Below, in pieces: positions 7,090 to 61,810 of a DNA stretch of 64,000 bases (its first letter is position 1; every line of letters begins with the position of its first letter). The translations under genes were made by a program, and so were the position numbers. The notes under the pieces were generated by a model. It was not told the origin of the DNA. It searched no databases and was given only the letters and a program-made list of their open reading frames with translations. The stretch is from Podarcis tiliguerta (Eukaryota), in assembly GCA_965153285.1 (NCBI GenBank), contig OZ229110.1; one strand, written 5' to 3'.

Positions 7090-7513
7090 ATGCAGAGATC
7101 TCAGGGGCAGAGCAACCTCCATCCGGCTGGGGGGACGGGACGGGGCTCAGGGAGAGCCCCCCCGAGCCCTGCCATCCCTCCTAAAAGAGCCAAAGTTGCG
7201 ACGACTGAGCAGGGAAGCCCTGCTGCTGCTGCGCCGGTCTTCCTGCAGGAGCTGACGGACACAACGGTCAGCATCGGCCACAGCATCCTGCTGAAGGTCG
7301 TGGTGGCAGGCAGCCCCCAGCCGCACCTGAGCTGGTACAAGGAGAAAGCGCCCATCGCATCCACCAAGGATCAGGACGGCCAAGAGGAGGAGTATGGCAG
7401 CCTCCGGATCTGCAGCTGCAAAGCAGCCGACGCTGGGGTCTACAAATGCAAGGCCAAGAATGAACATGGCGAAGTGGTCAGCAGCGCCACCGTGACTGTC
7501 GCAGATATGGAAG
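7090..7513 (+). CDS. SPEG: SPEG exon 1a (SPEG-beta N-terminus, Ig-like domain 1)
   Basis: GCC-ATG start. Encodes MQRSQG...RAPPSPAIPPKRAKV...APVFLQELTD...VVVAGSPQPHLSWYK...DAGVYKCKAKNEHGEVVSSATVTV, matching recalled human RAPPSPGVPPKRAKV...APVFL...GTPQPSLRWF. Donor G|GTACGG, phase 1. Confidence 0.93.
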
Positions 7514-7993: not shown

Positions 7994-8135
7994 NNNNNNN
8001 NNNNNNNNNNNNNNNNNNNNNNNNNNNNNNNNNNNNNNNNNNNNNNNNNNNNNNNNNNNNNNNNNNNNNNNNNNNNNNNNNNNNNNNNNNNNNNNNNNNN
8101 NNNNNNNNNNNNNNNNNNNNNNNNNNNNNNNNNNN
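7994..8135. other. Assembly gap (N run)
   Basis: Run of N. Confidence 1.
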
Positions 8136-31175: not shown

Positions 31176-33499
31176 CACATCACTACCGCCTCTCTTTAAA
31201 GCAAATACATCTAAGTGGATCCATTTTTGGAAGCAGCCTTTCACACACTTGCAACATGCTAAATATGTAACTGAGAGTACACATTAGATGTGTGTAAAGA
31301 ATACATTTGAGGGTGGAAGCCGTCTGTCCACATTACCTTGCCTTCAATAGTCCAAACAACAAAGATTCTTGAGGCATCTTAAAGACTATGGTAACTTTTG
31401 TAGGCTTCTTGTAGACCATTGTCCGCTTCATCAGATGCAGGAATCTTTGCTGTTTTTGAAATGTTGAGAGAAAGAGAGAGTCATTTGAGGGAAAAGTAAG
31501 TTGGGTGGTAGGCTAGAGGGACAACCGACGGAGAATGAGATGAAGGTGACACTTGAGTATACTTATAAGAGAGTTGATAGTTGTTAGATAAGCTAGAGTG
31601 GACACACTGGCCACATTTACACCATTCATTTAAAAGCACTAATATACCACTGCAAACATCCATGGTTCCCTCCCAAAGAATCCTATGAACTGTAATCTTT
31701 TAAGAGTGCTGAGTGATAAGGAACACCCCCCCACACACACACACACTCCCACAATCCCCAGATTTCCATGGGAAGAAGGATTGATTGTTTAACCACTTTG
31801 GGATGACCCATAGCTCAGTGATCCATGCCTTGCACAGACAGATCACAGGTTCAGCATCTCCAGGGGGAGCTGGAAAGAAACCTTGGAGAGCGACTGTTAG
31901 CCCATCCAAGCAATTCCAAGCTAGATAGACGAATGGTCTGATTCAGCACAAGGCATGACAACCAGAGACAGGTTGGGTATTGCCATTCTGTACTGCTTGT
32001 AAGCTTATAAACTTCTCATCTGGAGTCTGTCATTGCACAAGGCAAAATGCTGACCAAGGTGAACCAGCATGAAGTAGTCTGAGTCAGCATGGTGATCCTT
32101 CTGTAACAATCCTGAATTGCTCCCATTTCTCCCTAAGTTTATGCATCTTATGCTGGAGTTAGAGTGTCCTGATTTGACCTTCTTTGCACTGCTTGAGCTG
32201 AGCGGCTGTGTTGGTAAAGCCTATCGCTGGAAAGAGGGCCAGGCGTGTCGGCAGAGTTCTGTGTGGTTCTGCTGGGCCCCCGAAGAGGTTGCACGAAGAA
32301 CCCTCTATGGTGGGATCTTGGTCCGCTATGTTTGGTTCACCATTTCTGTTTGGAGGGATTGCTAGGAATGAATGGTTTAGTGGATATGAGGAGTACAATT
32401 GACTGAAAGTGGGGATTCAAGGTGTGGAAATTTTGAGCAGGAGGCAGTGAGAGGAGGCATTGTTTGTGAAGCTGGTAGCCTTATACAGTATTAGCTGCCA
32501 TCTGATAGTTAGCCTCTAACCCACACGATGGCAAACTAAAGGCATGGGGCTGTGTACAGCCCCCAGCCCCATTTTATGTGCTCCCCACCCCATGTCTTCT
32601 GAAACTGTTACTCTTCCACTCCATCACAGATGCATTCTTCCTATTCGTTTCCTTCTTATCTTTTCTGGATTGTTAAAGGGTCAGTATTTTATTTGATAAA
32701 TGTACTTGCTTTCTCCCCTTGTTGTATACCTTGGAGCAAAGAAGGTTTCTCTTACCCCTTCCAGATGTCAAAGAACAAATTTGTAGTCTTCTGTTCTATG
32801 TATCAAACCTTGTGGGGTTTACTTCTGCATAAATCTGCACAGGACTGGGCATTTTAATTTGAGGTAGCCATTGTGAAAATTGAAAAGGGTGTTTTCTTGA
32901 TTCTGGAGTAGATAATCCCAAACACCTTTGTCTCTGGCTCATGAGGGCTCCAATTGATGACCCCTCCACCAAGGGAATGCAGCCCTTGCCCACAACCTGC
33001 TTTAGCCCTTCTACACATAAGTATTGTGTGTGTGCGCGCATGCACGCGCATTGCACACAAACACACCTTCCTGGTCTTTCCCACTTAACCTAAATTTAGC
33101 AGGAGTTTTGCTTTTTCTGTGTTGTTCTGTGCTGCACCTAGAGCGTAGTCCTGCTCAGGGTAGTGGGCAGTGTAGTGTGTTTGCATGTGAATGTCACGCT
33201 GTGTACTGGCAGATTTTATCCAGGGATGGGGAAGGGAGAGAGGGGATGTTGAACCTCACAACTTCAGACAGGAGGAAACAAGGACTGCCTTGTAGAACAG
33301 AGGAAAACTGCATCTGGTCCAGCATCCTGCTTTTAACACTGGTTATCTGGATGTCTGTGGGAAGCTCTCAAGCAGGGCAGGAAGAAGGCAACAGCCTTTC
33401 CTTGTTACCCGTCCCTCGCCCCCCCCCCCACTTCCTCACTGGGGGTATGCTGCTTTTGAACGTGGAGGTTCTCTTTAGGTACCGTGGGAAACTCCTGTC

Positions 33500-34760
33500 G
33501 AGAGACGTCTCCCTCTGCAAGGGGCTTTCCTCAGGGCGCTCTTGGGATGCAGCCGGGAAGCACCGGGGCAGTGCCGATGCCCACTAGACGGGACCCACGT
33601 CCCGATGCCGAGTCTTGGCTTTGCACCACGGCGCCCTTTCGCCCGTCCCTGCCTCGATCCTTCCCACGAGGCCACCTCGCCATCTTCCAAGATGGGCAGA
33701 AACCACTCGCCTACCTCCAAGCCCTCCATGGCAACCGTGGATTGATGGGCGCTGTCGAGGGTGGCTCTGGGAGGGGTAAGCTCCCCACCCCGCCAGGCTT
33801 AGAGGGGAGGCAGCCCTTCTGCGGGGTGGGGGGCCACCCCTCTCATTTCTCTCCCCCCAGCTCCTCCCTCCAACCCCTCCCTCCCTCCCTCCGGCCCCTC
33901 CTTCCTCTCGGCCCCCACACCTCCCCGCCTGCGCTGTCATTGTCTCGGGCGGGCGGGCGGCGGGCGAGGCTCCGGGCTGGCTGGCAGCTCTGCCAGCGCA
34001 GGAGAGGCAACGAGCGGAGAGAGGCCGGCGCCCGCTTCCCGCGGAGGGATGCTCCTTCTGCCCCGGCCGCCCCTGCGCTCCGAGCCCGGCCCCGCCGCAT
34101 AGCGCTGACCGCCGTGGGGTGGGGTGGGGTGGAGGGTGCCCAGGGGGCGACGGAGGGGCGGACATGAAGAAGATCTGGGTGAAGAAGCGTCTCCAGGTAA
34201 CGGGTCCGGGCGTGGGACGGCGGGAGGGGAGGGACGGGGTGCCCAGGCGGGGTGCCCAGCAGGCATCATCAGGGCGTTGTGGACGCCGGAGGGGAAACTG
34301 AGGACGCGCACCCCTCGCGGAGCCCCACCCGGCTTTCCCGGAGTAGGATTCCCCGCTGGTCTCGGGATATGTGCCACCTTGTTGCCGGGGTGGGGTTGGC
34401 CACGCCAGGGTGGTGGTTGTAGATCGGTGGTCCTCTGCGCTCACCTTCCAAGCCCCTCGGCTCGAGGTGATGATGAGCAAGGTGCTGTGTGGGGCTTTTA
34501 AGAAATGCCCGGGATGGGATGGGGGGCGATTAGAAGAGCCGTGCCTCTTCTTCCCCTAAGATGCCCGAGGCGATAGATCCTGGGGGTCGTGGCTCTTTTT
34601 ACTCTCCATCCCCAAGCCCGGTGGCCACGGAGGCTGAGCGCCTCTGCGTCATGATCCGGCACTGCGCGTCAGCACCTGGCAGGAGCGCAGCTCCTCGTGG
34701 CCTGGACGTCACTCGGGGGCCTCCAAGCAGGGATGATCGAAAGGGGGGGGGGGAGGCTCC
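33500..34760. promoter_or_regulatory. CpG island / alternative promoter for exon 1b
   Basis: Sharp rise in GC and CpG density in an otherwise CpG-depleted intron, with GC boxes, around exon 1b. Confidence 0.85.
34164..34196 (+). CDS. SPEG: SPEG alternative first coding exon 1b (MKKIWVKKRLQ)
   Basis: GAC-ATG inside a CpG island, 11 codons, donor CAG|GTAACG, phase 0. Chains in frame to 37273 and then exon 2. Confidence 0.85.
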
Positions 34761-37272
34761 CCGGTTCAACTAATAGGGGGAAGGGAATCATTCACAGCAG
34801 GCATAGCTAGGGCATGTCATCACCCCACCACTGCCTGCTCCAGTAATAACGTACCCCACCACTTTCCCACCCCATCCCAACCTAACCCTCCAGCCCTGAT
34901 CTTCTAGCCAGGATGCCCCACCAGCTTCCCTCTCTGCAGGGGCGGGACTGGGAAGCAAGGGCACCAGATGAAATAAGGAAGAGGGGTGGGGGCGGGGGTT
35001 GTCATCCTTCCTGCTTGGTATCTGTCCAGAAGCATCTGTCTGGGCATCCTTGGAAACAGGATGCTTCATCTTTGATCAGATGGCTCAAGGCTTTCCTCCT
35101 CTGTTTCTACAGAGGCCTGCGGCCTTGGCAGCCTGAGGGGAGATGAGCTTTCTAGACCTGAGGACAGGGATGCCAGTCTCTCACCTCTGCAGAGCAGAGA
35201 GCTGTTGCATCCCAAACCAGGCAGGCAGGAAACAGACTGACACACATGGTGGAGTGGGGAGCATACAGCCATCCAAAACATCTCTTCCTCTCCTCCTATA
35301 TGCAGTTAAGAATGGAGAGCGGCAGAGAAAGAAGGACCCTGGCTGGTAAAGAAGGCTGGAGTCCGGTTAGGCCGTACAACCTAGTCAAGGCTATTGTATC
35401 CCCATTCATTGCCAAGGCAACAAATCCCCATTGCTAAGAAGGGATTTGCCTCCTGGCAGCCTCCAGCTGCAACACCTTTCGTGCTTGGTACTTACCTCTT
35501 TGTCCAAATGCCATTTTCCCTTTTTCGTACCATCCTAGTGCAACTCATATTGAGCAGGATGTCCAGCTTAAATTTTGGGCTGCTTGTGCTATTGGCCACG
35601 GAGCAGGGATGCACTTTGCCTGCCCAGATGCCTCTTTGCCCAACGTGCCACAGTAGGAAGCTGCTGGGTATGTGATCCTGGAGCCAGGGCTTGCCCATTG
35701 CCATGTGCCCGACAGGGGGGATGCCAGCCAGGTATCCATTACTGCCGTTTTATTGCATTTCCGTTTTCTTAATGGGGGAATTATCCACCAACAGCATAGC
35801 TAATCTATTCATACATCTTTCTGGCCTGGCACATGGGCTGCCCGCCAGCGCCAGTCTTGTTTGGGCAAGCTGGCTTGGCTGGAATACAAATCCACCTGGA
35901 TCAGTTGCTGTTGGGAGCATTTGTTTCTTCTGGCTGGATTTTATGCCTCTGATACCTCCCACCTCAATGATGTCCAGTACAAAAAAGAAAAGGCCAAACT
36001 GGGTGGGGTGGGTATGTACATCACCCTCTCTCTTGTGCCAGCACACTGCATCACCACATCTCTCACTTATCACAGAATGATCCTGTCACCTCCATTTATT
36101 GCTGCACAAGGTGTTTCACCTCACTATTAGCATTGTGGAAATCTAGCTGGAAGAGCAAATTTTCTGGGAGATGGGACAGCAGGAAATCTGGGAGTGAGGA
36201 GTGGGCGACTTTGTGCATCAGATGCTGTGTGTGTGCGCGCACACACACACATACGCACGTATCAGTTTACACACATGCACAAGTGCATCTGTTTCACTGG
36301 TCCTGAATTCAGAGAGCTGTCCTTCCCTGATGGATGGCATGATTGGCCTGTTCTTGGGCAACTTGTCACCTAGGAAGCCAGTTGTAGCTGGATGCATGTG
36401 CCAGGAATGATTTCCCACGTGGATCCCGTAAGTCTTGATAGCTGCTCGGAACCACATAGAAGAGCATAATGGAGAAGAGAGAGTGAGCAGAGGGGAATTG
36501 CCAGTGGCAGCACTTCAGCCTGTTACTGTTAGGTTGGTGTGCCTGCGCATTTGGGGCAACTGGACTGGATCTTCATCTGTGATGAAATGCGCAAGATGTG
36601 CCTCTTCTGAGGGGACTCACCAAATGTTGCAGACTCCCAGCTGCTCAGGGCTCACCAGAGGACAGCAAGATGAGAATTTAAACAGTGGAACGCTTATCAT
36701 TGGGTGGAGGGCAATCTCTCTGAGGATTTCCTCCCAGGAAAGGGGCAGAAAGTCAGCCTCTTCTTTCTTCTGATCTGCCTAGATCACCACAAGCACTCAG
36801 GCTCCTGTCCTTCTGACTTTTCCCGACTTTTGGTGGAGCCGGCAGCACATGACCTTCGGTCGCACCCACGCCATATGTTTAATGTACATTGCTTCCTCCA
36901 GAGACTCTGAAATCTGCAGTCTACCTCTCAGAGTGCTACAGTTCCCAGTACCCTGATCAAACTACAGTTCCCAGGAGCCATGCACACTAATTGTATGGTG
37001 TGGATGTGACCATTGTGCTTGGCTCTGGTGGATCCCATGCCTTGCAAGGCTTGGTGTAGATGGTACAGTAGGGGGCTGATACACTTTTTGCCCTGGTGGC
37101 AAGTTCAGGAGTAGGTGGAAGGCCTTTCCCCTGGCCTCCTGCTGGGGTTCTGGTCTTTGTGGTGACTGATGGCTATATCCCGTGAGCACAGCCCTGTTAC
37201 CATATTTCCACTATCTCCCTCTCTCCATCTCAATCGGAGGTAATGCTTTTTCCTTTTCTTTTTCCTTTGCAG

Positions 37273-37312
37273 AAAGGTGGCCACTCGCGGCGTTTTGGGC
37301 GCTTCACGCATG
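37273..37312 (+). CDS. SPEG: SPEG alternative small exon 1c (KGGHSRRFGRFTH)
   Basis: Long polypyrimidine tract ending TTTGCAG, 40 nt, locally CpG-rich, donor G|GTGCGT. Phase 0 to 1 fits exon 1b and exon 2. Confidence 0.85.
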
Positions 37313-39087: not shown

Positions 39088-39117
39088 TTTTCCGCTCCTG
39101 CAGAAAGCAAAGTTACG
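39088..39117 (+). CDS. SPEG: Candidate 30-nt symmetric microexon (VFRSCRKQSY)
   Basis: Pyrimidine tract with TGC motifs, AAG acceptor, donor G|GTAGGA. Phase 1-1, frame-preserving, no stop. Confidence 0.65.
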
Positions 39118-41615: not shown

Positions 41616-41705
41616 ACTCGGAGACGGGAGAAGATGATGCCAGCAGCACACAGGTGACCCAGCGCAGCCAGCTCCAGGATGAGACCACCTATAGCTCCCC
41701 AACAG
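41616..41705 (+). CDS. SPEG: SPEG exon 2 (DSETGEDD...YSSPT)
   Basis: TTCAG acceptor, G|GTGAG donor, 90 nt, phase 1-1. Matches recalled human DSETAEDD...FSTPT. Confidence 0.93.
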
Positions 41706-43609
41706 GTGAGGAGAAGGCGGCAGGTGAATGGAGAGGTTTGGCATTCTGAGCAGAATGGGCATGGAACTATATTTCAAACAACGATGTTGCTGCTGGTGCC
41801 CCAGCAATTCTGCCCCCAAATCCCCTCACAATCCTGAGACTGTAGCCTCCCTGCTGCCTGGCCCTGTCTGAGGCAAGAGTGGTATGTCACATATACCATG
41901 CCAACACAAATAGCACCCCCCCCCCCGTGATTTGTTCACCATGAATCCTATGAGCAGGGTCTTTTTCTGTCCCTGAGTGTCCAGCTTTTTTGGATCATTG
42001 GCCAAAGAGTTTAACTCTCTCTTCAGGGTTCCTTTTTGCAGGCAGCTACCATTGGAGCATGAGAATTACTGCTCCCCGGAGACATAGCCAACCTGACATC
42101 ACCTTTTCCTGGAAGAAGGGCACATATTAACCGACGCAGAACATTAATTTAATAAAGAGGGCAACTTTATATCAGAGGAGGACTCAGCAAAGCATAAAGG
42201 TCATTAGATTCCACAGAAATAAAACTGAAAAATCGCAGGCTTTAACTATAGCCTCCTCATGCTGGGTTCCTTCAGTACCCGGTCACTTCAGGCAGTGCTC
42301 ATGCACCTTCCACAGAATGACTAGGCAAATGGGGCAAGGGGAGATAGAGCCCTTGGTTGATCATGCACCCCACTTAGCAAATTGTGCTTAATGGGGGCTG
42401 TATTCTGAATTGAGCAACACTTGGAATCTTTAATGAGCAGGGTTTAAGTGTCGATGGGCATATATATCATTCTGCATAACATTATACTGTATAAAAAAGC
42501 CAGTCACACTCCCGGGTGACAAAGAAACAGAACTCAGGATGGAGCTGTGCACATGTTTATGCAGATAGGAGCAAGCTGGATTCTCAGAAGTCAGCAGTGT
42601 GGGGAGTCAGGTTTATTTCCCTGAGAGCACCCACCTAAGCAGGTGAATAGTTTCCATTCATTCTTTTGAGTAAATGTATGAGATTATTAACCATGCGCTT
42701 CTCACTGTTAGCAACCTTCTTTGGCTTTCCAACCTCAGTTTTTCATTAGGCAACTTTTAGTCACCTGTTTGCCTTTCCACAATCTCCTTTAGTTTAAATC
42801 GTTCTTTCCTCTCGAAGAGTCTCTTTAAAAAAATGCAGTCCTATTCTCTCACATTCTTTTTACTGAACAAAAAAACAGGTCCGAGTTTTCCATCACAGAA
42901 GAGGTTTCCCATTGTTTTGATCACCCCAGTGCCTCTTTTCTGGTGGTTCTGGGGACAACAACACAAGGCATAAGCTCCCATTTTCAGTTTGGGCAACTTT
43001 ATCCCCAATGAACTTGTCTTCAGTGCTTGGCACAGAGCACTGTGGTTCTGGCCTTCCATCTCTGCTCTTCCTTCAGTAGGTAGTCTTGGGTAAGCTAGTC
43101 TCTAAAAAGTTGGGGGAACGATGATCTACCTTGCAAAGCAGGATAAACAAGCCAATGATTGCAATGCACTGTGCATGTTAAAAGAGCTACATGAATATTC
43201 ATTTATATCATTGCAATAAGAAATTGTTCGTCTCTCCTTCCTTCACTGCAAATGCCTGACCTTGTGTGTTGCATAATTGTGTTTCCCTTCACTCTGGCCG
43301 CACCATCTTGGTGGCTGAGTTGAGTTATTAAGTGACCAACCTGGCCTTGTCTTCTTTTCCTTCTTCGCCCCTCTTCTTTGTCCTTTCCAGCTGAGAGAAA
43401 AATGCTTATTCTTAGCCCTCAAGAACATGACCTGACGCTAACCCATGATATATGCAGTGGCACTGCACGCTCCAAGAAACTGATACTTTACAGCCTCCTA
43501 AATTAAACAATATCGATAGAATCTCGGGTTATCAGGCCTCGATCTGATGCAAGGGAGATGGGGGGCTTTCCAGCCCCCTCGATCAGTCCATGTCTGTCTT
43601 TCCTTGCAG

Positions 43610-45415: not shown

Positions 45416-47344
45416 TATTAAACAACTTCAGGCAGGCAAATCTGGAGAAACAATAGAATACAGAAGCACAATCAGAGGTAGGTAGTCATCCTCATCCATA
45501 AGGATGATGTGAAAGAGAGGCTGGTTGCTGGTGATTAAGGGAATGGTAATTAAGAACCCAACAAATGATGTAATGATGGTGATGTGATTATCTCTTTGGT
45601 AGTGGTGCTTTTGGCTACACTAATGCAACTTTTGTTAAATTCAACATACACACACATTTTAACCCCCCCTCCCCGCTAAGAACTCCTTTTATCCCAGAAA
45701 TGTAGTGATGCAGGGAGGCAAACAGGGAGAGATGATAAGCCGCGTCGAGTGCCAAATCTCTTCCTCATACCATATATAGATCCATTTCAGTTTCTGAGCC
45801 ATTAGCAGGCACTGCCCACACATTTTTATTATTTCCCCCCTGTAATAATGGGAAACTGGATACCAGCGGTTTTTCTTAAAAGCGAAAGCTGAAACCCGTC
45901 ATGCTGTGAAAATGGCAGCACACTCCATGTTAACTGCAGAGGCAGTGAGTGTCGTAAGGATCTTTGAGAGGGTGGGTCCAGAGCTACATTAGGTCACTTG
46001 AGACTCCCTCATCTCCTTCTTCTTTCCTCCTGAGTTTGCTTTCCCAACTTTATCCTCACGCTTATCATCCTCCGGCTATGGTACCTGACTAAGTATACAC
46101 TTGCATAATTCTCACTGTGTGCATGCAGCTGGACACGCGTGCCCATTTGTTGTAAGGAACTAAAATGGCCTTGGAATGAATGTATGTGTGCCAAGTATGT
46201 ATCTGTTCGTATGTACACCTGAGTTAGTGTTTGTACCTGGGGGAAACAGCATGCCTGTGTACAGGATGCAGCTTTCTATTCTCCTACCCTCTGCCTTCTG
46301 TTGCATTTCTGGCTGCACCAGGGCCTCCCCTTGTCTTCCCCTGCTTCCTCAAGCCAGGCCAGCCTATCCTCATCTACCACTGATGCACAGCCTGATGAAC
46401 TCCCCCCAATCTCTTCCTTTGCCCTTGTGCAGCATCTGGCATGGCTCAGTCAGCAGATAAGACCAAGAGTTGGATCTTGCCAGGAAGCGTGGGTATTTTC
46501 CCTGGACTCTTGGCGGAGAATCCCAGTTCACCCATCTGGCCAGTCTTGGAATCAAATATGATGATGATTTATTTATATATATATATATGCCACCCATCTG
46601 ACTGGGTTGCCCCCAGCCACTCTGGGCAGCTTCCAACAAATTAAAACACAAGACATCAAACATTTAAAAAATTCCCACATTTTTATGAGGCAAGACCCAT
46701 TGCAATGCAATCCAGACCACAGTGTGCCACAGCACAGAGCAGGGGCACTGTAGAAAGGTCTAGGTGGGGCAAACAGCTTGAGGAGATTCAGATAGTAAGC
46801 CAAGCCACACAATGCTGGAGAAGGCAAAAACAAACACACACACCCTCCTCTGTACACATGCACACACATCTTCATCTAAGGACAGAAGTAGACGACTGTT
46901 CCTCCTTCTCATTGCCTCACCTCTCTCTTCCATGGCTAATTTAAACCCCAGGTCTGCCATTAGGAGGGGTTGGCCATGTGGTTTTTTATTCAGGGGGGTA
47001 CTCAAGGGTACGCAGTGCTGGCACCTCTTTTGTTGTGAGGCACTTACTGTAACAACTTCATGGTGAGTACCAGCACCTATTTTTTCTAGAAAAATAGCAC
47101 TAGTTCTCCATATTTATTTATTTATTTCATAAAAACGTAGCAAGGCGGAGTAGGAGGAGAAAATCAACAAAAGATAAAATCAGCAATTATAAGGATAAAA
47201 TCAACAAAAGTTCCGTAAAGCAGCATTCAAAACATCAATAAGACGTCAGCATAGGCACCTGCTCCCTTGCCGCTCACCTTCTTTTGAGTTTTTCAGGCTG
47301 TCCTGCCTTAGCAAACTATGCCATGTCTTGCCTTCCAACTGCAG

Positions 47345-48741
47345 CAACCTCCCCCATGGTGGGTACCGGAGGGATGATGCCAACAGCAGCAGCAAAACCA
47401 GCACAGATACCCTCCACCCACCAGCACAGAAGCCTCCTCTCCAGCGCCCAGTGTCCCCCAGAGCAGGGCAGTGCCCCGTCCACCCGCCTGGGGCTGGCCG
47501 TGGCCCCACCCCACCTGTGGCTCCCCGCAGGAAGCTGCTGATGCCCCCCGAGTTCCAAGATACGGCATCCGAGGAACAGGACGAAAAGCTGAAGCGCCCC
47601 AAATCATCTGGCTACTCTCAGGCTTGCACAGGAGAGTCCCGGCCCCAGACGCCGCTGAGCGAGGCCTCCAGCCGCGTCTCCGTCCTCCGCCCATCGCCCA
47701 AGCTGCCGCGGACGGGCTCCAAGATCTTTGACAAGCTGAAGTTCTTTGAGGAGCGGCGCAAAAGCCTGGAGCAGAACGAGAACCCTTTCGCGGGGCACAC
47801 ATGGCTACCGCTACGCAAGACGCGCTCTTTTGACCAGCCCGGCTTTGACGATGCCAGCCCCTTCCTCTCGGCCGTCTCCCACGAGGACCTGCAAGAGGAC
47901 ACCCGCTCCGAGCTGGGCGGCGTGGCGTTCCGGCGCCGGGCCTTCCACCAGAAGGCGGCCTCCTTGGATGAGCGCGGCCGCTTCTCCAGCCGCGTGCACG
48001 ACATGGAGCACAAGTTCACGGAGGAGCTGGGCCGCATCAAGCGCACCGTGTCTCAGCAGCAGCTGCGGCGGTCGCAAGAGCTCTTCAGGTCACCGTCGCC
48101 ACGTTCCTCCGCCGAGCCATCTGCTCCCAGGGTCCCGCCACCACGGAAACTCAAGCCCCTCAAGGCTTTGCCCCTGGCAGAGAATGCCCATGGCGTGCAG
48201 CAGCTGGTGTTGTCCAGCGTGGTCCTGGTGGGGCCCAGAGACGAGACCAAGGGGACGCAGAAGCCTCTGGCGAGGAGCGTGGCCACAGCTGAGCAGGTGG
48301 CAGAGCCCAGCAGGGGTCAGAAGGAAAGCGAGCTGAATGGGCAGGATCTGCGGAGGAAGGTGGAGCAGTGCCCGCTGACTCTGGCAGCCCCCTTGGGAAG
48401 GAGAGACCTCCTGCAGGCTGGGCATCCAGAGAGCAATGACTGCATGGATGGAGGAGGGTCTGTGAGCGCGGCGAAAGGGAGCCATGAGCCCAAGGGTCCA
48501 AGTGCAGCCTCGCATGCCCGGAAACGGGAATCTGGCCAGAACGGACATTCCCTGCCCTGGGCCAAGATGGAGCCAGGAGCAGATAGAAGCAGGGCAGGGA
48601 CCCACGGTGCAAACAGAGAGTTGGAAAGAAAGACTGGGAAAGTGGCAGAGAAAAAGGACAACGCATTGCAGCCTCAGGAAGGGAAGAGCACTCGGAGCAG
48701 AGGCAAAGGGCGCCGGACGCGGCGAACGTCGCCTGAATCAG
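47345..48741 (+). CDS. SPEG: SPEG exon 4 (large disordered Pro/Ser/Arg-rich linker)
   Basis: Lies within ORF 47328-48932. Contains ESRPQTPLSEAS, DKLKFFEERRKSLE, QKAASLDER, ELGRIKR and GKGRRTRRTSPE. CTGCAG acceptor, G|GTATGG donor, phase 2 to 1. Confidence 0.95.
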
Positions 48742-51853: not shown

Positions 51854-52149
51854 GTAAGTGGCCGGGGAAAGCCAGCCAGATGGGCGGGGTACAAATAATA
51901 AATTATTATTATATTATTATAAGTGTGTGATGAAGGCAGTGGAGGCAGCCCAGAGAGGACCAGCCGAATCCCTGAAGGCCAAGGGAGGGTTGTAGAGTCA
52001 TATTCCTTCCCAGGCCAAGTTTGGGGAGAAGCAGTTTTGTGCCTTGGGGCTTAGTTAGCATCCTAGGCTAGGTCTTTTCCTGTCAACCTTGTGGTGCCTC
52101 AGGCTGCTGCCGCTGCTCCTGCTGAAAGAGAGATGAGGCTGCCTTTACC

Positions 52150-52740
52150 CTACAAGGCTTGGTTTAGGCCAGCCTGGCTGACAAACAGCCAGCAGCAGTC
52201 TTGAATGCGGGGAAGAAGGGAGAGACGGCCTGGACTGCTGGGCTCTCAGCACCAACCCCACGAGGTGGCGGCGGGGGAGGTCGATCTGGCTGACGGACTG
52301 ACTCCGATTCCTGATCCGTGTTCCGGACCACAAACTCCGCGGGGAAACCCGTGTCAGCGGCGCTTGCGGTTTGCAAGCCTTCCTGGGCAAGTGCAAATGA
52401 ATTATCCGAAAGGATGCAAATGAGGTCGCCCGTCTGTTGATCTGAAATGTGAGCCCTGGAGGGGCTGGGGTCGGCGTCTGTCTGGAGCCCCGATGCCTTC
52501 CTCGGCTGTGGCTCGAAGGGAAGGCGGTTCCGAAGAGGCTCCTGGATTCTGCCCGGCCTCTGGCGCCTCCGTTGAGGATCCCTTTGCCCACTCGTCTCCT
52601 CCGTGTCGGACGCTGTGTTTGTTAAGAATCGGGGATTGAGAGAGAGAGATCATCCTCGGGAAATGGCTGTAGAATCCTCTTTGCCGCGCCGATTGCAGGC
52701 TCGGGAGGGGCGCCCCGTTTGTTCCCTGCGTTCTTGCGCT
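52150..52740. promoter_or_regulatory. Intronic CpG island; candidate APEG-1/SPEG-alpha promoter and non-coding first exon
   Basis: CpG-dense non-coding block in intron 6, candidate donor AT|GTGAGC at 52449, octamer ATGCAAAT at 52414-52421. Confidence 0.6.
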
Positions 52741-52826
52741 GCAATCCTATGCATGTTTACTCGGAAGTAAGTCCCGCTGCGTTCAATAGAACTTAAACCC
52801 AGGTAAGTGTGCATAGGATTGCAGCT
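52738..52826. mobile_element. Short palindromic MITE
   Basis: GCTGCAATCCTATGCA...TGCATAGGATTGCAGC inverted ends. Related copy at about 16980-17064. Confidence 0.7.
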
Positions 52827-55564
52827 TTAGTGGGTTTGGAATTGGGAACTCGGCAGGGAGAGGGAAGGCAACTTTTCAACTCCTAGGTGGGCGTTTTGAG
52901 GGGAACAGAGATGGGTGAAGCGGAGAGGGGAGAGTGTCTCTTGCTCCCGTTAACCCTTTGTTTGTACAACTGAATGGTGTGAAGGGATGAGGACCCTCCA
53001 ACATCACCACATCTGCCCTATAGGTAGGAAGAAATGGGATTCTGCTTTGGGTGCCCCTCTGGGGGCTGAGAATTTATTGGACTATAACCTCCCAAAGCAA
53101 TGGGGCTGCAGAAGGGGAAGCCAACCTCAAATGCTCTCTGGGCCTCTTACCTTGTTGTCCAGAAACTTGGAGGTGAGAGAGACTCTTATGCTAAGGTGTT
53201 TTACCTTGTCTTTGGGGATAGGGGAAAGCAAGGAACTACAAGGCAGGCCATTCCCATCAACACAGGATAATCTTTCCCTGCCTGAAGCAGAGCATGATGG
53301 AGGGCTTTGAAAGACTCACCCTTTTGTCTGGATCGAACACACCTCTGCTTCTTCCTCCTATTTTGTGCAAAGGGCTAAGAAACCTATCCTGTCTCTTTAG
53401 ATTTTCTTGTAAACATCCCACCCATCCCTACTCAGCTTGAAGGGCAGCATTGCCACAGAAATTGCCACAAGACTATTTCCACTAACTGGCCCCACAACAA
53501 GGCCTGCTCTTCTCACAATGCATACACTGCAAGTTGCAGTCGTCCCAGCGACTAATGTCACCTTGGCCCCTTTCAGGGAGAGCAAGCCAGGAATGATGCT
53601 GCCAACAAGAAAAAGAGTAGTGGCGCCCATGATTGGAGTTGCCTGATTCATGACTGTTTAAAGTCTTTCTTTTTACCAGTTGGAGATGACATAGATATAT
53701 ATCAGCAGTGGGCTTCCCTGTATGCCCCTGGGACTTGGCAGGGTTACAGGCAGTGTTGGATTTGATATCTTCTAAAGCAGTACTGGGAAAATGACTTGTT
53801 GTTTCTGTTTCTTCACTCTGCCTCTTTCTGGGTAAGAGGATTGGATATAGACTAGAGCCTAACTGCAAGAAGCGTTTCATAACCCAGATGGTCAAATTAT
53901 TTACATTTATTTATTATAAACAATGCACTATGCAAATTACACACTAATAGAGATGTTGTTTGTGCAGATTCATATATGCACATTTGAGGTGCCAAACTTT
54001 TCACCTCATGACTTTGCCACAACAGATTTGCACAAAGAGCTGTTTCTCTGAAACGGCCCCATTATACACACATGCATGAAAAGTAGTCAAAGAATTGTAG
54101 GTCATTACTACGTTTATTTATTTGTTAATACACTTTAATCTCACCCCTCCTCCAATGATTTCAGGAAAGCATAATGGTGTCCCCTCAGCCCCAATTTTAT
54201 TTTATTTTATTTTATTTTGTCCTCAAAATGACCCTTTGGGGTAGGTAAGACTTGAGAGATAATGACTTGCCCAAGGTGAGCTTCATGGCTGCTGAATATC
54301 TGAAAACTAACATTCTTTCTTGAACTGATAGTTGTCATATGGGGGTGAGTTTGGATACAAGCCTCTCTATAGAAAACTGAATTAATAAAATCCTTGCAGA
54401 AGGATATTACCATCTCAGTTATGAAGACAAACATAATTCAGAAATGTCACATGGTACAGTCCTACCTCCTCAGAATGCGGGAGGAGGGAAGTTCACATGT
54501 TTGTCATTAAAAGAAAAAGCAAAACAGCCTCCATGTCTGTGGAAAGCATGTCAGGAAGAAGGACGGTTCTGACTTAGTCTCTCTTACTTTTCTACTTACA
54601 GAGATAGTTAATTTAATTAAACGGGTAGCATTCAAACATGTGATCCTTCAACTGCATTTTGAATGATACAGGCCTAGGAGGACTGTATACCATGTGATGT
54701 TTCTGATTGTGTGGTTCTGTTCTAAATCAGCCTCTAGGCTCCATTCCACAGAAGCAGCAAAGGTCTATTTGAGATAACAATGTTCATGCTAGGCTAAGTG
54801 CAGTGTCCTAATTGCAAAATAGGGCATAGTGGAACAGTCAAGAGGAAGGATGGAAAGAACTAATGGGGTGTTAGTTGGCTTAGGTAGGGGCAGGAAACTG
54901 GAAACTTGCATACATAAGAAGGAACAGGGGAAAGCAAAGAATGAAAACGCTCTAACCATTGCACACCCTTAGGGCCAGTGTTTTCGTTTCAGGGCCAGGG
55001 CCACGGTTACATTATATGCTTGCCACTTCCCCAAGTTTCCATCTGGGGCTGCTCTAGTAACGTTTGAATGATGAAAATCACGTAGGAAGAGTTGACAATG
55101 TGTTACATCCCACATCAGCAGAGTGGGATGCAGCCTGCTAGGAAGCTGGTAGCCATAATGCCCCAGTAAGAGTATCTAAAGATAACATAAGCAACCAAAC
55201 ATTTCCTGCTGCAATGCATTTCTATTACTGTTTTGAAGGAACCAATGTATTCCAATGGTCAATTTGTGTTATTACTTTTTGTTTGTGCCCCCTCTTCATG
55301 CGCTATTTTTTTAAAAGCAAAAGCAAATTGAAATTTCATCCCTTAGAATACACTGTAGGTGCGCTGGGCTATCATGTAGAAAGCTAGATTATATCATTTA
55401 CTCTGTGCTTGTGGCTAAACCATCAACTAAAATCCCTGTGTATGAGCCCTGACTGCTAGGTGGGCAGCTATGTCCTGGTCCTGCTTTCCCCCTTGTGCTG
55501 GAGAGCTTTGCTGCTTCAATGTGCTGTTCACAAGCCATGCCCTAACCCTCTTCTGCCTGTCTAG

Positions 55565-56165: not shown

Positions 56166-56824
56166 GTGAGTGGGTTTTATGATACAGCATAACTTCACAA
56201 GTAGCCATGTTGTCCTGCGATGAGATGGGTGGCGAAGCTTTCCCAGTTTTGCAAAATAAGAATCTCTCTCAGGCAACCAGTAGGGGAACTTGTGTCCATC
56301 AAGAAGAGTGTTGGGTTTATTTCATTTTTCCTGTCTGGCCTTCAGTACTCCACAACTGACTAACAACAGTGTGATATGTAGACTGGCAAAATATTAAACA
56401 GACAAGGCTGGTCTTTGATTTCCAAAGGGCACAAGACCCATCCAACCTGAGAATGGTTTGTTTTGTATGTAAGTGGTGGGATGGCAAAAAGAAAGCAGGT
56501 CCTCGGCCTTCCAGAATGTATCAAGAATCAGACCTGAGACTGATAGGCCTGGATGTAATGGCAAAAAAAAAAAGGGGGGGGATCTCTGATCTTATGGCTT
56601 GAACTGCCTTGACTATATTGTACCAAAAGCTATGTTTGTAGAAGCAACAAGGTTGGGGGAAGGCCAGTGCAGAATTGACCGTCCAGATGAAGTATGTAGC
56701 TTCTTCCTGAGGCATGCTGCTGTGGAGGAGGGATGGTGAGATGAGATGACAGAAGAAGCATTTTGTGAAGTTGGATGGAGTTGCAAGCACTGCAGACTCT
56801 CAGACCCTCTCCTCTGTCCTCTAG

Positions 56825-57000
56825 GTTGAAGAACAGGCATCCAATAAAATATGGGCGACGCATTTCTGCTGTGGAGGAGGACGATGGATCTTTCTGCCTA
56901 CATATCCGCATGGTGGAGTGCACTGATGCTGGCTATTATGCCTGCAAGGCCATCAACGAGTATGGCACCAAGCAGTGTGAGGCCAAGCTTGATGTACAAG
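56825..57000 (+). CDS. SPEG: SPEG exon 9 (Ig domain 3, part 2)
   Basis: Encodes LKNRHPI...DAGYYACKAINEYGTKQCEAKLDVQ. CTAG acceptor, G|GTACCT donor, phase 2 to 1. Confidence 0.95.
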
Positions 57001-59547
57001 GTACCTTTGGAAGCCACAGAGCATGAAGATTAATGCTTGCCTGCCATGGGCTGTCCCCAGAATATCCTGCTTGCATGCCTATTTCCTTGGTTTACTCACT
57101 CATGTAAGCATGCTTCTGACTCCCCCCCCCCCCAACATCCTGTGACCTATATCAATCCTCTGCCCACGAGTAGCCTGTGGCTCCATGGCTGCTTGTTTCT
57201 GGTTGTACTGTAACTCTGTCTCCTGCCCCTAGAATTCATGACAGCCCTTGACTGAATGTTGCCCTTTTTTCATCATGAGTCTAAGAAATTTAGAGCTCCA
57301 GTTTAGAACTTCAGCCTAACACCAGATTATCGAGAGGCACAAGCAATCAGGTTTCTGTGGACTACTATGGTAAATGGGGCAAGGAGAGAGGTTCAGCTGA
57401 AAGCAAGAAGGTATCATGAGTTCCTGAACATAAATTAGGATATCTTTAACACTTTTTGAATGTTGAAAGCATTTCCTAAATCCTTACAGCAGACTTGTAT
57501 GGTAGTTATATTATACCCATGTTGCCAAGGTGGGCTTGAGGTTAAGAAGATAGTGGCTTGCTGAGGGCCTCCAGATTAGTGTAGTAAGAGGCAGATTAGA
57601 ACTGGGGACTTGGCTATTTATTTATTTTATTTAGCAAAACTTACACACAGCTTTATAGTAATAAAACCACAAAGCTGTTTGACAAATAATAAAAAACATT
57701 AAAAGTATAAATAAAAGACAGTTAAACAGGTACTTAGAAAACATTCAAAACTAATTAAAATCAACAGTAAGCTAAACCATTATTCTATGCTACAAGCTTA
57801 TATTGGTTTTTCTTTCATTTTAAGTGGCATGGACAGGGTGAGGTGTGCCACCTCTGGTAGCAGCTATTAAGTAATGTTAAAAAGCAACAAATTAATTAAT
57901 CAATAGATTTGGATTTCCTGCCTCAGGCACCAAAATGTTTTGGACTGTCACTATTCATGACTTTCATTAGAGAATCCTGGGAATTTTACTTGCCTCCTTA
58001 GAACTGGGGACCCCTGGAAGGAGGGAATGGGGCCAAGCTAGTTGAGATACTTCATTTTGGAATAGTGGATGCTTATGCTGGGATTGAGATCAGCCTTTAA
58101 TGCTGGGATTAGGGGTGCTCCCAGTCTATTTTTGGGTGGGATTCAGTCACATACTGAGGAATTCATGTTGCACAATTATAGTTGGTTGGGAGGTCTCTAC
58201 ACACCCCAGATAGGACTCTTTCCAATAAGGAAAGTGATGGGAAAACACACTGGATAGTATAGGGTAACACTTACTTAAATGATGCAACATCATTTAACCT
58301 CCCACAAACAAATCAGGATGAATGTTCATTAAATAGCCAACATCCTCTAATCTTCCTGTAAACAAATGAGGGTGAATGCTAATTAGCACCAGTCATCTGA
58401 AAGCACCCTAGTAAGAGCAGCAACGGGAAGGGGATTCTTCTCCATTCCATTTATTTGTACACTCAAAATTTCACCCACCCATGGGTGGGAAAGCTGTGGG
58501 TGGGGACTGTGTGTGTGAATAAACAAAGAGGAAAGGGCTAAGTGGGCCACCCACTTCACTACTCTTCAGCTCTCAAATGCAACCATTAGAAAGTTCAAGT
58601 TCACGACTGTAGTGTGGGCATGCTCTGAGCCACTAGCCACTAGCGCAGTCCAACACAAGGCCATGTTTTGGCAATCCTCAGCAACATTTGACACCCTCTC
58701 ACCCTTCCAGCCCTTGCACTGCCTTCCCAAAGGCTCGGGGGTTTGGGAAGGAGGTGTGAGGGCTCTGACAGGGTCAGAAAGTTAGCTCTTTCTCAGCTCT
58801 GAGAAGAAGCTGGAAGGGCCTTAGGACACTGCCAAAAGCATTGCACCTCCTTCCCAAAGCCCTGGCAGCATGAGGTTGCGGGGTGAGGTGTCAAATTTTG
58901 GCCTCTCGCTCTCCCCCACCCTGGCGCAACAAGGCAGCGTGTGCCCCACAGGTTCCGTATTGAAGTAGGTAGGAAATGTTGGACCGTCCCTGCACTAGGC
59001 TAGGCTCGTTCTCCTGGGGAGCCCTCCATAGGTAGCTGCCTTCTCCTGAGCATGGCAAGTGCAACTGCCTTGAGACCCTTTGGATGCCTGTTCCAGATGG
59101 GAAGAAGAGCATTCAGCTGTTGCTTAGCAACCGAGCACCAACTGCCTGTGTTCTCCCAATCCTCCCCCGTCCCACCTTGAGCTGAAACGGTGGCAGCTGC
59201 TGTGGAATTTTGGAGAAAGGAACTGTGAGCCTCTGCTCAGAAAGGAAAGAGATGAGAGAGATAGCCCACTGAGGGGGGCTGATGGCTGTGTATACCAATG
59301 TACTGCTCCCACATTCCCATAAAGACAGCCTCTGTCTCTGCCAGTGGCTTCCACGCTAACCATTGGGGCAATGAGCAGCAGCAAGGTTTACCGCCAGCTC
59401 TCAGTACACTCCTCCCTGACCCCTCAGTCCTACCATGCTTTTTTTTCTTGGCTTGGTTCTGCCTTTCCCCCCACCCTGTGGTACCCAGAACTGGGTCCCA
59501 GTGGTGGTCTGCCACCTTCTTTCCAGTTCATTTCCAGCAGAAACTAG

Positions 59548-60836: not shown

Positions 60837-61810
60837 GGGGAGTGAGCTAAGGTACTGCTTGGCCCCTGGGCCGCTCTAGCCAGACAACTTGGGCAGTTGC
60901 CTCTGCTCCCAGCGTTGACTGAACAAACCAGACTGGCAAGGCTTGGCTCCTGCCCCCACCCACTGGATGGCCAGCGCCGAGACTCACCTGGACCCACAGG
61001 GCCTGGCTGCAGCTGGAGGAGTGAGCCACTGTGGGTGGGAGAGTAGTTCTGGGCTGCCCTTAGCTGCGTGAGCTGAACCAATCTGTGGCATCTCCTTAGT
61101 GCGTGGGCAGGAAGCCTCTCTGTACAATCGAGTCTCCATGTGATCCACTCTAGGGCATATAATCTCAGTGGTGGGCCCTGTGCCTGTACCCAGGCGTTAC
61201 ACCTCTAGGTGCTGATGGTGTTTAATCCCCGTGCCGGCATCCATTTCTGTCTGGCCTGAACTGTGGCCAATGTGTGGTGCTCTCTGTTTCTTCCATGTGT
61301 CCATGTCTTCTTGCCCCTGTTTGCACACTCCTGTTTCCAGGGGCCTGGGGCAGAGCACTAACTTGTCTGCTCCCTGGCCAGCTTCTCTAGAGGCTTGTGC
61401 TGCTCACCCACGGACCACACACACTAAAATGAGGCAGCTTTGGAAGGAGGAGGCCCAATCTAGGCCTTGCTTTTCCTCAAATCCAAGAAGGTGTCTGTGG
61501 GCAGAAGACTACATGCTCAGCTTTACGCAAGGCAGCGTCCTTATCTGCACGAAGTCTGGACAGCACAAGCTCACTGGGAAGGGACCTTTGCCCCTGAGTT
61601 GTGTGGGATGGAGGAGGGCTCAGGGAAATAATGGCACCCCACTAGACTTGAGCCTGCTGGGCTATGGAGCATCTTTAATGAAGGAGGCCAGGGATGCAGT
61701 CTCTTACTACCATTGTGCCCACCCTGCTCTGGGAAGGTCTCACAGGGGCTGGGCTACAGTGAACCCCTTTTTTGTAGAAGAAATAAAGTCTGTTTCGTTT
61801 GGTAAAAGTG
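60837..61810 (+). other. SPEG: Alternative terminal exon (APEG-1/BPEG type): a few codons, stop and about 0.95 kb 3'UTR; 3' end approximate
   Basis: ACTAAC branch motif at about 60797, pyrimidine tract, TACAG acceptor, then GGGGAGTGAGCTAA. AATAAA at 61782-61787 with a downstream GT-rich tract. Confidence 0.72.
61782..61787 (+). terminator. Poly(A) signal of the short kinase-less isoforms
   Basis: AATAAA followed by GTCTGTTTCGTTT...GTGTGGTTTGTT, in intron 9 of the long isoform. Confidence 0.65.

Follow-up and report, generated by a model that had tools for sequence, protein, structure and literature searches.

The 64,000-nucleotide stretch of Podarcis tiliguerta DNA analysed here (GenBank assembly GCA_965153285.1, contig OZ229110.1; the whole stretch is called the window below) carries SPEG, a centronuclear myopathy and dilated cardiomyopathy gene whose product belongs to the complex for excitation-contraction coupling, where its substrates are JPH2, RyR2 and SERCA2a. 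Two mini-exons inside the first SPEG intron encode a short polybasic N-terminus that resembles the regulatory segment of smMLCK (the myosin light-chain kinase of smooth muscle, encoded by MYLK). Conservation of this N-terminus among jawed vertebrates marks it as a real isoform kept by purifying selection, and we give about an even chance to its being a putative Ca2+/calmodulin-binding site, perhaps also able to bind acidic lipids. The exons and the isoform are already annotated in NCBI RefSeq and Ensembl models and by several independent genome projects, so that their discovery is not new. The value of the present analysis lies in the interpretation, since the likeness to the smMLCK segment is apparently undescribed: in the open-access literature searched, no paper prints the alternative peptide or states the likeness.

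The alternative first exons, the exon to which they are spliced and the canonical exon that they replace are as follows.

34164-34196, plus strand: exon 1a, coding part; MKKIWVKKRLQ, 33 coding nucleotides, donor CAG/gtaacg, phase 0.
37273-37312, plus strand: mini-exon 1b; 40 nucleotides, encoding KGGHSRRFGRFTH plus one nucleotide, donor ATG/gtgcgt.
41616-41705, plus strand: exon 2, common to the canonical isoform; (D)SETGEDDASSTQVTQRSQLQDETTYSSPT(G).
7090-7513, plus strand: canonical SPEG-beta exon 1, coding part; N-terminus (MQRSQGQ...PPKRAKV...) and first immunoglobulin (Ig) domain, Ig1, 141 residues, replaced by the alternative start.

Exon 1a begins with the ATG at 34164 (Kozak context gacATGa), and the acceptor of exon 1b (ttcctttgcag) is preceded by a polypyrimidine tract of about 26 nucleotides. 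Exon 2, behind the acceptor cttcag, continues in frame with exons 1a and 1b as (D)SETGEDD... and ends at 41705 (CAG/gtgagg), not at 41707. The resulting lizard peptide has 24 residues, nine of them K or R, and is interrupted by a phase-0 intron after Q11. The first-pass annotation had described two in-frame mini-exons with good splice sites, and on re-reading all of its coordinates, phases and residue counts were correct. The mini-exons lie about 27 kb into a first intron of 34 kb, where splice-site quality alone does not rise above chance; as judged from sequence, it is their conservation across the jawed-vertebrate classes that lifts the exons and the isoform above it. The first 86 residues of the canonical exon 1 in the window are those of Podarcis raffonei isoform X1 (P0197). 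Two runs of N are present in the window, at 654-788 (135 bases) and at 7994-8135 (142 bases), the second about 480 bases downstream of canonical exon 1.

To follow the N-terminus across species, SPEG proteins were gathered with HMMER by comparing the large window exon at 47346-48740 with 1.84 billion representatives, and then by cluster look-ups and two word-indexed searches. Among the proteins collected, 55 gene models begin with MKKxW. The conservation in other vertebrates on which the first-pass annotation had made its proposal depend was found: an identical or near-identical N-terminus occurs in about 40 species from all jawed-vertebrate classes: the elephant shark, ray-finned fishes, lungfish, amphibians, lizards, birds and mammals. 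Annotated models of the same and of other species join it to exon 2, as expected of a predicted SPEG isoform. The exact peptide of the window starts XP_053256977.1 (P0202, P. raffonei X5), which does not contain the microexon described below, XP_028596943.2 (P0199, P. muralis X4) and P. raffonei X4 (P0204), which both do, and a model from Anolis sagrei; the exon 1a peptide is identical in the Podarcis and A. sagrei models (P0199, P0202, P0204 and P0212). Homologues of exon 1b extend from a teleost (P0022) and the elephant shark (P0035) through to mammals. The peptides of the other groups, with exon 1a given first and exon 1b second, read as follows.

Mammals: MKKLWVKKRFQ KTGHSRRAFGRLTH
Birds: MKKIWVKKRFQ KTGHSRRFGRFTH
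Lungfish: MKKIWTKKRFQ KTGHSRRTFGRFTH
Gar: MKKIWAKKRFQ KTGHSSRTFGRFTH
Cyprinids and anchovy: MKKIWSKKRFQ KTGHSNRTFGRFTH
Frogs: MKKSW(M/I)KRRSQ KSGHSRRVFGRFTH
Caecilian: MKKIWVKKHFQ KAGHPRKSFGRLAS
Elephant shark: MKKIWAKKRLQ KAGHSTRTFGRLSH

Between horse and the other classes, identity is 68-92% over the alternative peptide and 30-47% over the next 150 residues. All sampled sauropsids (birds and lizards) share a one-residue deletion, giving 24 residues compared with 25 elsewhere.

The MYLK sequence with which the first-pass annotation had compared the lizard peptide agrees with the published smMLCK calmodulin-binding peptide (PMC3484071), human smMLCK regulatory region (PMC5505704) and MLCK pseudosubstrate inhibitor (PMC2132793). 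The resemblance itself, to the autoinhibitory and calmodulin-binding segment of MYLK, was borne out by an ungapped alignment of 25 residues and by a search of the PDB that matched smMLCK peptides only. The horse 25-mer aligns with human smMLCK with 12/25 residues identical and 19/25 positive (BLOSUM62 score 64, 32 bits), and the elephant shark 25-mer with 12/25 identical and a score of 62. Shuffled 20,000 times, neither peptide gave a score as high as its own (mean 21, standard deviation 4.5, maximum 48-49). The lizard peptide, taken by itself, is a weak match: it scores 38, requires a one-residue gap, and its score is reached by 58 of 20,000 shuffles, corresponding to a p of about 0.003 for one target. 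The residue reported as missing from the lizard is accounted for by the deletion common to the sampled birds and lizards; the 25-mers of all other classes can be aligned with MYLK ungapped.

For the PDB search, the horse (P0161) and shark (P0035) 25-mers were compared by phmmer with 177,635 distinct PDB sequences. The horse peptide gave eight matches, all of them the smMLCK calmodulin-binding peptide or sensors in which that peptide is embedded (2o5g_B, with the best E value of 0.0046, 1cdl_E, the RS20 peptide 1qs7_B, 5jth_B, 9mxd_B and 5jqa_B; the calcium sensors include RCaMP and WHaloCaMP). The shark peptide gave three matches, all to the smMLCK peptide, and the E values of both searches ranged from 0.0046 to 0.03. 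No other chain among these PDB sequences reached an E value of 10 with either peptide. The PDB also contains the calmodulin-target peptides of skMLCK, CaMKII, CaMKK and DAPK. Since only smMLCK was matched, the likeness is specific to MYLK and not generic to basic amphipathic helices. When the MYLK 25-mer was slid along all the proteins collected (876,158 windows), the alternative N-termini scored highest (49-64), followed, in the same register, by the C-terminal tail of SPEG kinase 1 (LKKFLSRRKWQRSLISYK, 35-44); no unrelated window, such as those of Ig domains and hemicentins, scored above 36. Both halves of the alternative N-terminus match MYLK (26-34 each) and the kinase-1 tail does so in its first half only. 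The likeness to MYLK is statistically supported and stronger than the single lizard peptide shows, and we infer that it reflects homology rather than convergence.

The kinase-1 tail was also considered as a possible source of the alternative N-terminus. The two score only 3-11 when compared directly and the MYLK-like second half is absent from the tail, and an origin of the N-terminus by copying of the tail was therefore rejected. A calmodulin-binding site has been predicted in the tail (PMC7957886). In the P. raffonei X5 protein (P0202), residues 1745-1775, which are encoded beyond the window, form the kinase-1 tail HLKLFISRRKWQRSQISYK, which is in register with the MLCK segment and resembles it over the first half; residues 3244-3280, likewise beyond the window, form a kinase-2 tail of a different type (YLMKLRRQTLTFTTSRLKEF).

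The phase-0 intron after Q11 is conserved across species in SPEG. In models from a cyprinid, quails, killifish and a frog, every alternative first exon or insertion has its junction precisely at the Q11/K12 boundary, and the intron position is therefore old. For MYLK, one paper places an intron within the region coding for the calmodulin-binding segment. Both genes thus have an intron inside the same segment of roughly 20 residues, a correspondence that for MYLK is known to the region and not to the codon. The first-pass annotation had put the two introns at the same position; the conserved break in SPEG and the shared segment agree with this to the level of the segment.

Exon 1a lies in a CpG-rich region, and a further small exon may be included downstream of exon 1b.

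33001-35000, no strand assigned: CpG island surrounding exon 1a within SPEG intron 1, presumed to serve as the alternative promoter; GC content 0.60-0.66, CpG observed/expected ratio 0.51-0.63.
39088-39117, plus strand: optional microexon of 30 nucleotides, encoding 10 residues, located after exon 1b and before exon 2; phase 1 to 1; coordinates worked out from the translation.

No stronger CpG island is present in the first 46 kb at the 5' end of the window, and this one has GC boxes on both sides of the ATG; its use as an alternative promoter is presumed from these sequence features. Upstream of 34164 the lizard sequence stays open in this frame for 387 nucleotides, with no in-frame ATG. Models from minke whale (X2, P0182) and swan goose (X4, P0167) extend the frame upstream of MKK through GC-rich sequence whose translation is rich in Pro, Gly and Arg; the CpG island has probably misled the annotation in these cases. 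Two further CpG-rich kilobases within SPEG, 47001-48000 (observed/expected 0.72) and 52001-53000 (0.64), are candidate internal promoters of the SPEG-alpha or APEG-1 type; the former overlaps the large disordered-region exon at 47345-48741, and the APEG-1 Ig region starts, with its first exon at 55522, about 2.5 kb downstream of the latter.

The microexon is included in 35 of the 54 alternative-N-terminus models that were parsed, from cyprinids and gar to mammals. It encodes an RK-x-S motif, and one shark Ensembl model begins just upstream of it. In the frog Anomaloglossus (P0147), an insertion of 13 residues (GSELPCFPGHKPK) falls exactly between exons 1a and 1b, and in the minnow Rhinichthys (P0269) the microexon is preceded by a 10-residue extension, GVFGFIDNSE. 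These pieces suggest that the region holds more alternative mini-exons or splice sites.

We propose that an internal promoter, provided by the CpG island of SPEG intron 1, would drive transcripts starting at exon 1a, which would be spliced to the 40-nucleotide exon 1b, optionally to the 30-nucleotide microexon, and then to exon 2. The Ig1-containing N-terminus would thereby be swapped for a polybasic peptide of 24 residues (25 outside sauropsids). We take this peptide to be a specific relative of the smMLCK regulatory segment, detached from any kinase domain, and it most likely acts as a Ca2+/calmodulin-binding site. Like many basic amphipathic calmodulin sites, it might bind acidic lipids too. 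In this way calcium could influence where full-length SPEG and the short, kinase-less, BPEG-like forms are located or what they bind, with Ser16 and Thr24 as candidate phospho-switches, Thr24 being aligned with the first Ser of the MLCK RLSS motif. Most classes keep the basic cluster, the hydrophobic residues at MLCK positions 1 and 14 (F/L10 and L/F23), the G-H pair and G-R-L. The 1-14 spacing itself (F/L at 10, L/F at 23) is found in mammals, lungfish, gar, caecilian and shark.

Several observations weigh against this proposal. The main Trp anchor of MLCK is F, L or S in the SPEG peptide, with Ser at position 10 in frogs, and position 8 is R or T and not hydrophobic. The spacing in lizards and birds is 1-13, following their deletion. 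The helical hydrophobic moment is 0.18-0.50, compared with 0.64 in MYLK, with the lowest values in birds and lizards. None of the residues that never vary (W5, G14-H15 and F-G-R) is a classical calmodulin anchor, and the binding mode, if any, may for this reason differ from textbook calmodulin binding. Statistical support for the likeness is moderate, with an E value of about 0.005 across the PDB for a query that is a basic, biased peptide, and a Karlin-Altschul E value of about 0.05 for the horse 25-mer in a proteome-sized search space (1.1e7 residues). Finally, among the sequencing runs queried with 33900-34260, none recorded as RNA contains the exon 1a stretch; 6-34% of its words occur in small runs, uncertain as to type and coming from several organisms, and their reading is uncertain. 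The first-pass annotation had already described the lizard anchors as altered (W to L, V to R, and 1-13 in place of 1-14 spacing), and the residues and the spacing are as it claimed. Canonical calmodulin binding is less likely in this lizard than in mammals.

The same features bear on a tentative alternative, which we consider possible although well short of even: that the peptide is conserved as a polybasic-hydrophobic membrane anchor for phosphatidylinositol bisphosphate (PIP2) or phosphatidylserine, as a nuclear-localisation signal or as a docking site for some other partner, that it does not bind calmodulin, and that its MLCK likeness is inherited but irrelevant, or convergent. A net charge of +8 to +9 within 24-25 residues and the invariant W5 and F20 would suit such a role, as would the weak amphipathicity in sauropsids, the variation of the anchor position among F, L and S, and the distance of about 1,400 residues to the nearest kinase domain. 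However, the smMLCK match includes Q-K-T-G-H and R-A-x-G-R-L, residues for which a generic basic signal would have no use, and it is specific, with nothing else in the PDB at an E value of 10.

That the N-terminus is real and unrelated to MLCK regulation, the resemblance being a coincidence of two short basic peptides, we regard as improbable. The peptide has only 25 residues of biased composition, the likeness was spotted after the fact, and both the proteome-scale E value and the number of shuffles that equal the lizard score leave room for chance. Against this, no shuffle equals the horse or the shark score, every PDB match is the smMLCK peptide, the match to MYLK is better than that of the bona fide homologous tail in the same protein, SPEG itself belongs to the MLCK family, and both genes have an intron within the same short segment.

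The first-pass annotation had also raised the possibility of a displaced pseudosubstrate acting in cis or in trans. Such a pseudosubstrate or substrate-like segment would fill the catalytic cleft of one of SPEG's own kinase domains (in cis) or that of another kinase of the MLCK family (in trans); this is the least probable of the explanations, because MLCK autoinhibition needs the segment right after its own catalytic core and the SPEG peptide is N-terminal, distant and carried by kinase-less short isoforms as well, even though it aligns with the MLCK pseudosubstrate inhibitor (PMC2132793) and the SPEG kinases are in the MLCK family. The alternative N-terminus lies about 1,430-1,480 residues ahead of kinase 1 instead of directly C-terminal to a catalytic core. 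Given its extreme N-terminal position and its presence in kinase-less models, the peptide cannot act by MLCK-style autoinhibition. Calmodulin binding does not depend on position and is preferred over autoinhibition for this reason. A complex predicted for the horse SPEG kinase-1 core and N-terminal residues 1-40 had a score of 0.01, which is evidence neither way. SPEG kinase 1 has been reported to be active without calmodulin.

Kinase-less models that start with the alternative N-terminus are annotated in mole (858 residues) and quail (937 residues) and consist of a long disordered region, an Ig domain, SPEG_u2 and a second Ig domain. The tails of two database proteins (P0231 and P0277) were used in a tblastn search to locate the corresponding end in the window.

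56805-57026, plus strand: APEG-1-type Ig exon (end 56999) with read-through to a stop.

Read-through past the donor at 56999 gives GTFGSHRA followed by the stop codon, which is likely, as read from the sequence, to be the end of kinase-less APEG-1/BPEG-type products. The mole and quail short isoforms end at the homologous place (...LEVRGE and ...LEVRGGVR). A kinase-less form had been suggested to arise through a terminal exon at 60837; the annotated isoforms of mole and quail end instead at the APEG-1-type terminus, at about 57000.

The order of these elements invites a broader proposal. In MLCK, the regulatory segment is followed by a linker, the telokin Ig domain and a stop; the SPEG 5' module is ordered alike, and its last Ig domain is the telokin-like APEG-1. 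It is conceivable, though in our view unlikely, that the 5' module of SPEG (exons 1a and 1b, the long linker, two Ig domains and the terminator) is the surviving post-kinase half of an smMLCK-like gene that became fused upstream of an obscurin-type tandem-kinase gene, and that it still works both as a Ca2+/calmodulin-regulated, kinase-less BPEG-type protein and as the calmodulin-sensing N-terminus of full-length SPEG. A tblastn search with both SPEG kinase domains gave nothing below an E value of 2 for a kinase-like coding remnant upstream in the window. Degenerate kinase exons upstream of exon 1a were considered and rejected, all tblastn E values in the window being above 2.

A conserved, promoter-specific N-terminus that resembles the best-studied calmodulin target peptide would bear on calcium feedback to SPEG. 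If calmodulin binding is true, it would offer a possible function for the kinase-less products of brain and aorta, and the one-residue deletion of birds and lizards would represent a natural spacing mutant.

Compared with known systems, the alternative N-terminus is closest to MYLK, with which it shares 12-13 identities over the 25 aligned residues (M-K-K, the basic triplet, Q-K-T-G-H, R-A and G-R-L) and has S or T at the first Ser of the MLCK RLSS motif. It differs from MYLK in that the segment forms the extreme N-terminus of an alternative isoform, is encoded by two mini-exons of its own and has no catalytic domain before it. It also differs in having F, L or S for the Trp anchor and R or T for Val8, in being less amphipathic and, in sauropsids, one residue shorter, and in that its calmodulin binding is putative. 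The SPEG kinase-1 tail, LKLF(L/I)SRR(K/R)WQRSQISYK, is likewise in the MYLK register and has the pattern xKxΦΦx-basic triplet-Φ-Q-basic in its first 12 residues, whereas a MYLK-like second half, KTGHxxRAxGRL, is found only in the alternative N-terminus. Among SPEG products, the reviews consulted describe four isoforms and mention none with the alternative N-terminus. BPEG comes from the same gene and uses the same downstream exons, and the mole and quail short forms, being kinase-less and ending after the APEG-1 Ig domain, agree with its description. Finally, MYLK and SPEG each have an internal promoter for a small Ig-only protein, telokin in MYLK and APEG-1 in SPEG; the two proteins are 33% identical, both arise from internal promoters of an MLCK-family gene, and this parallel is already known.

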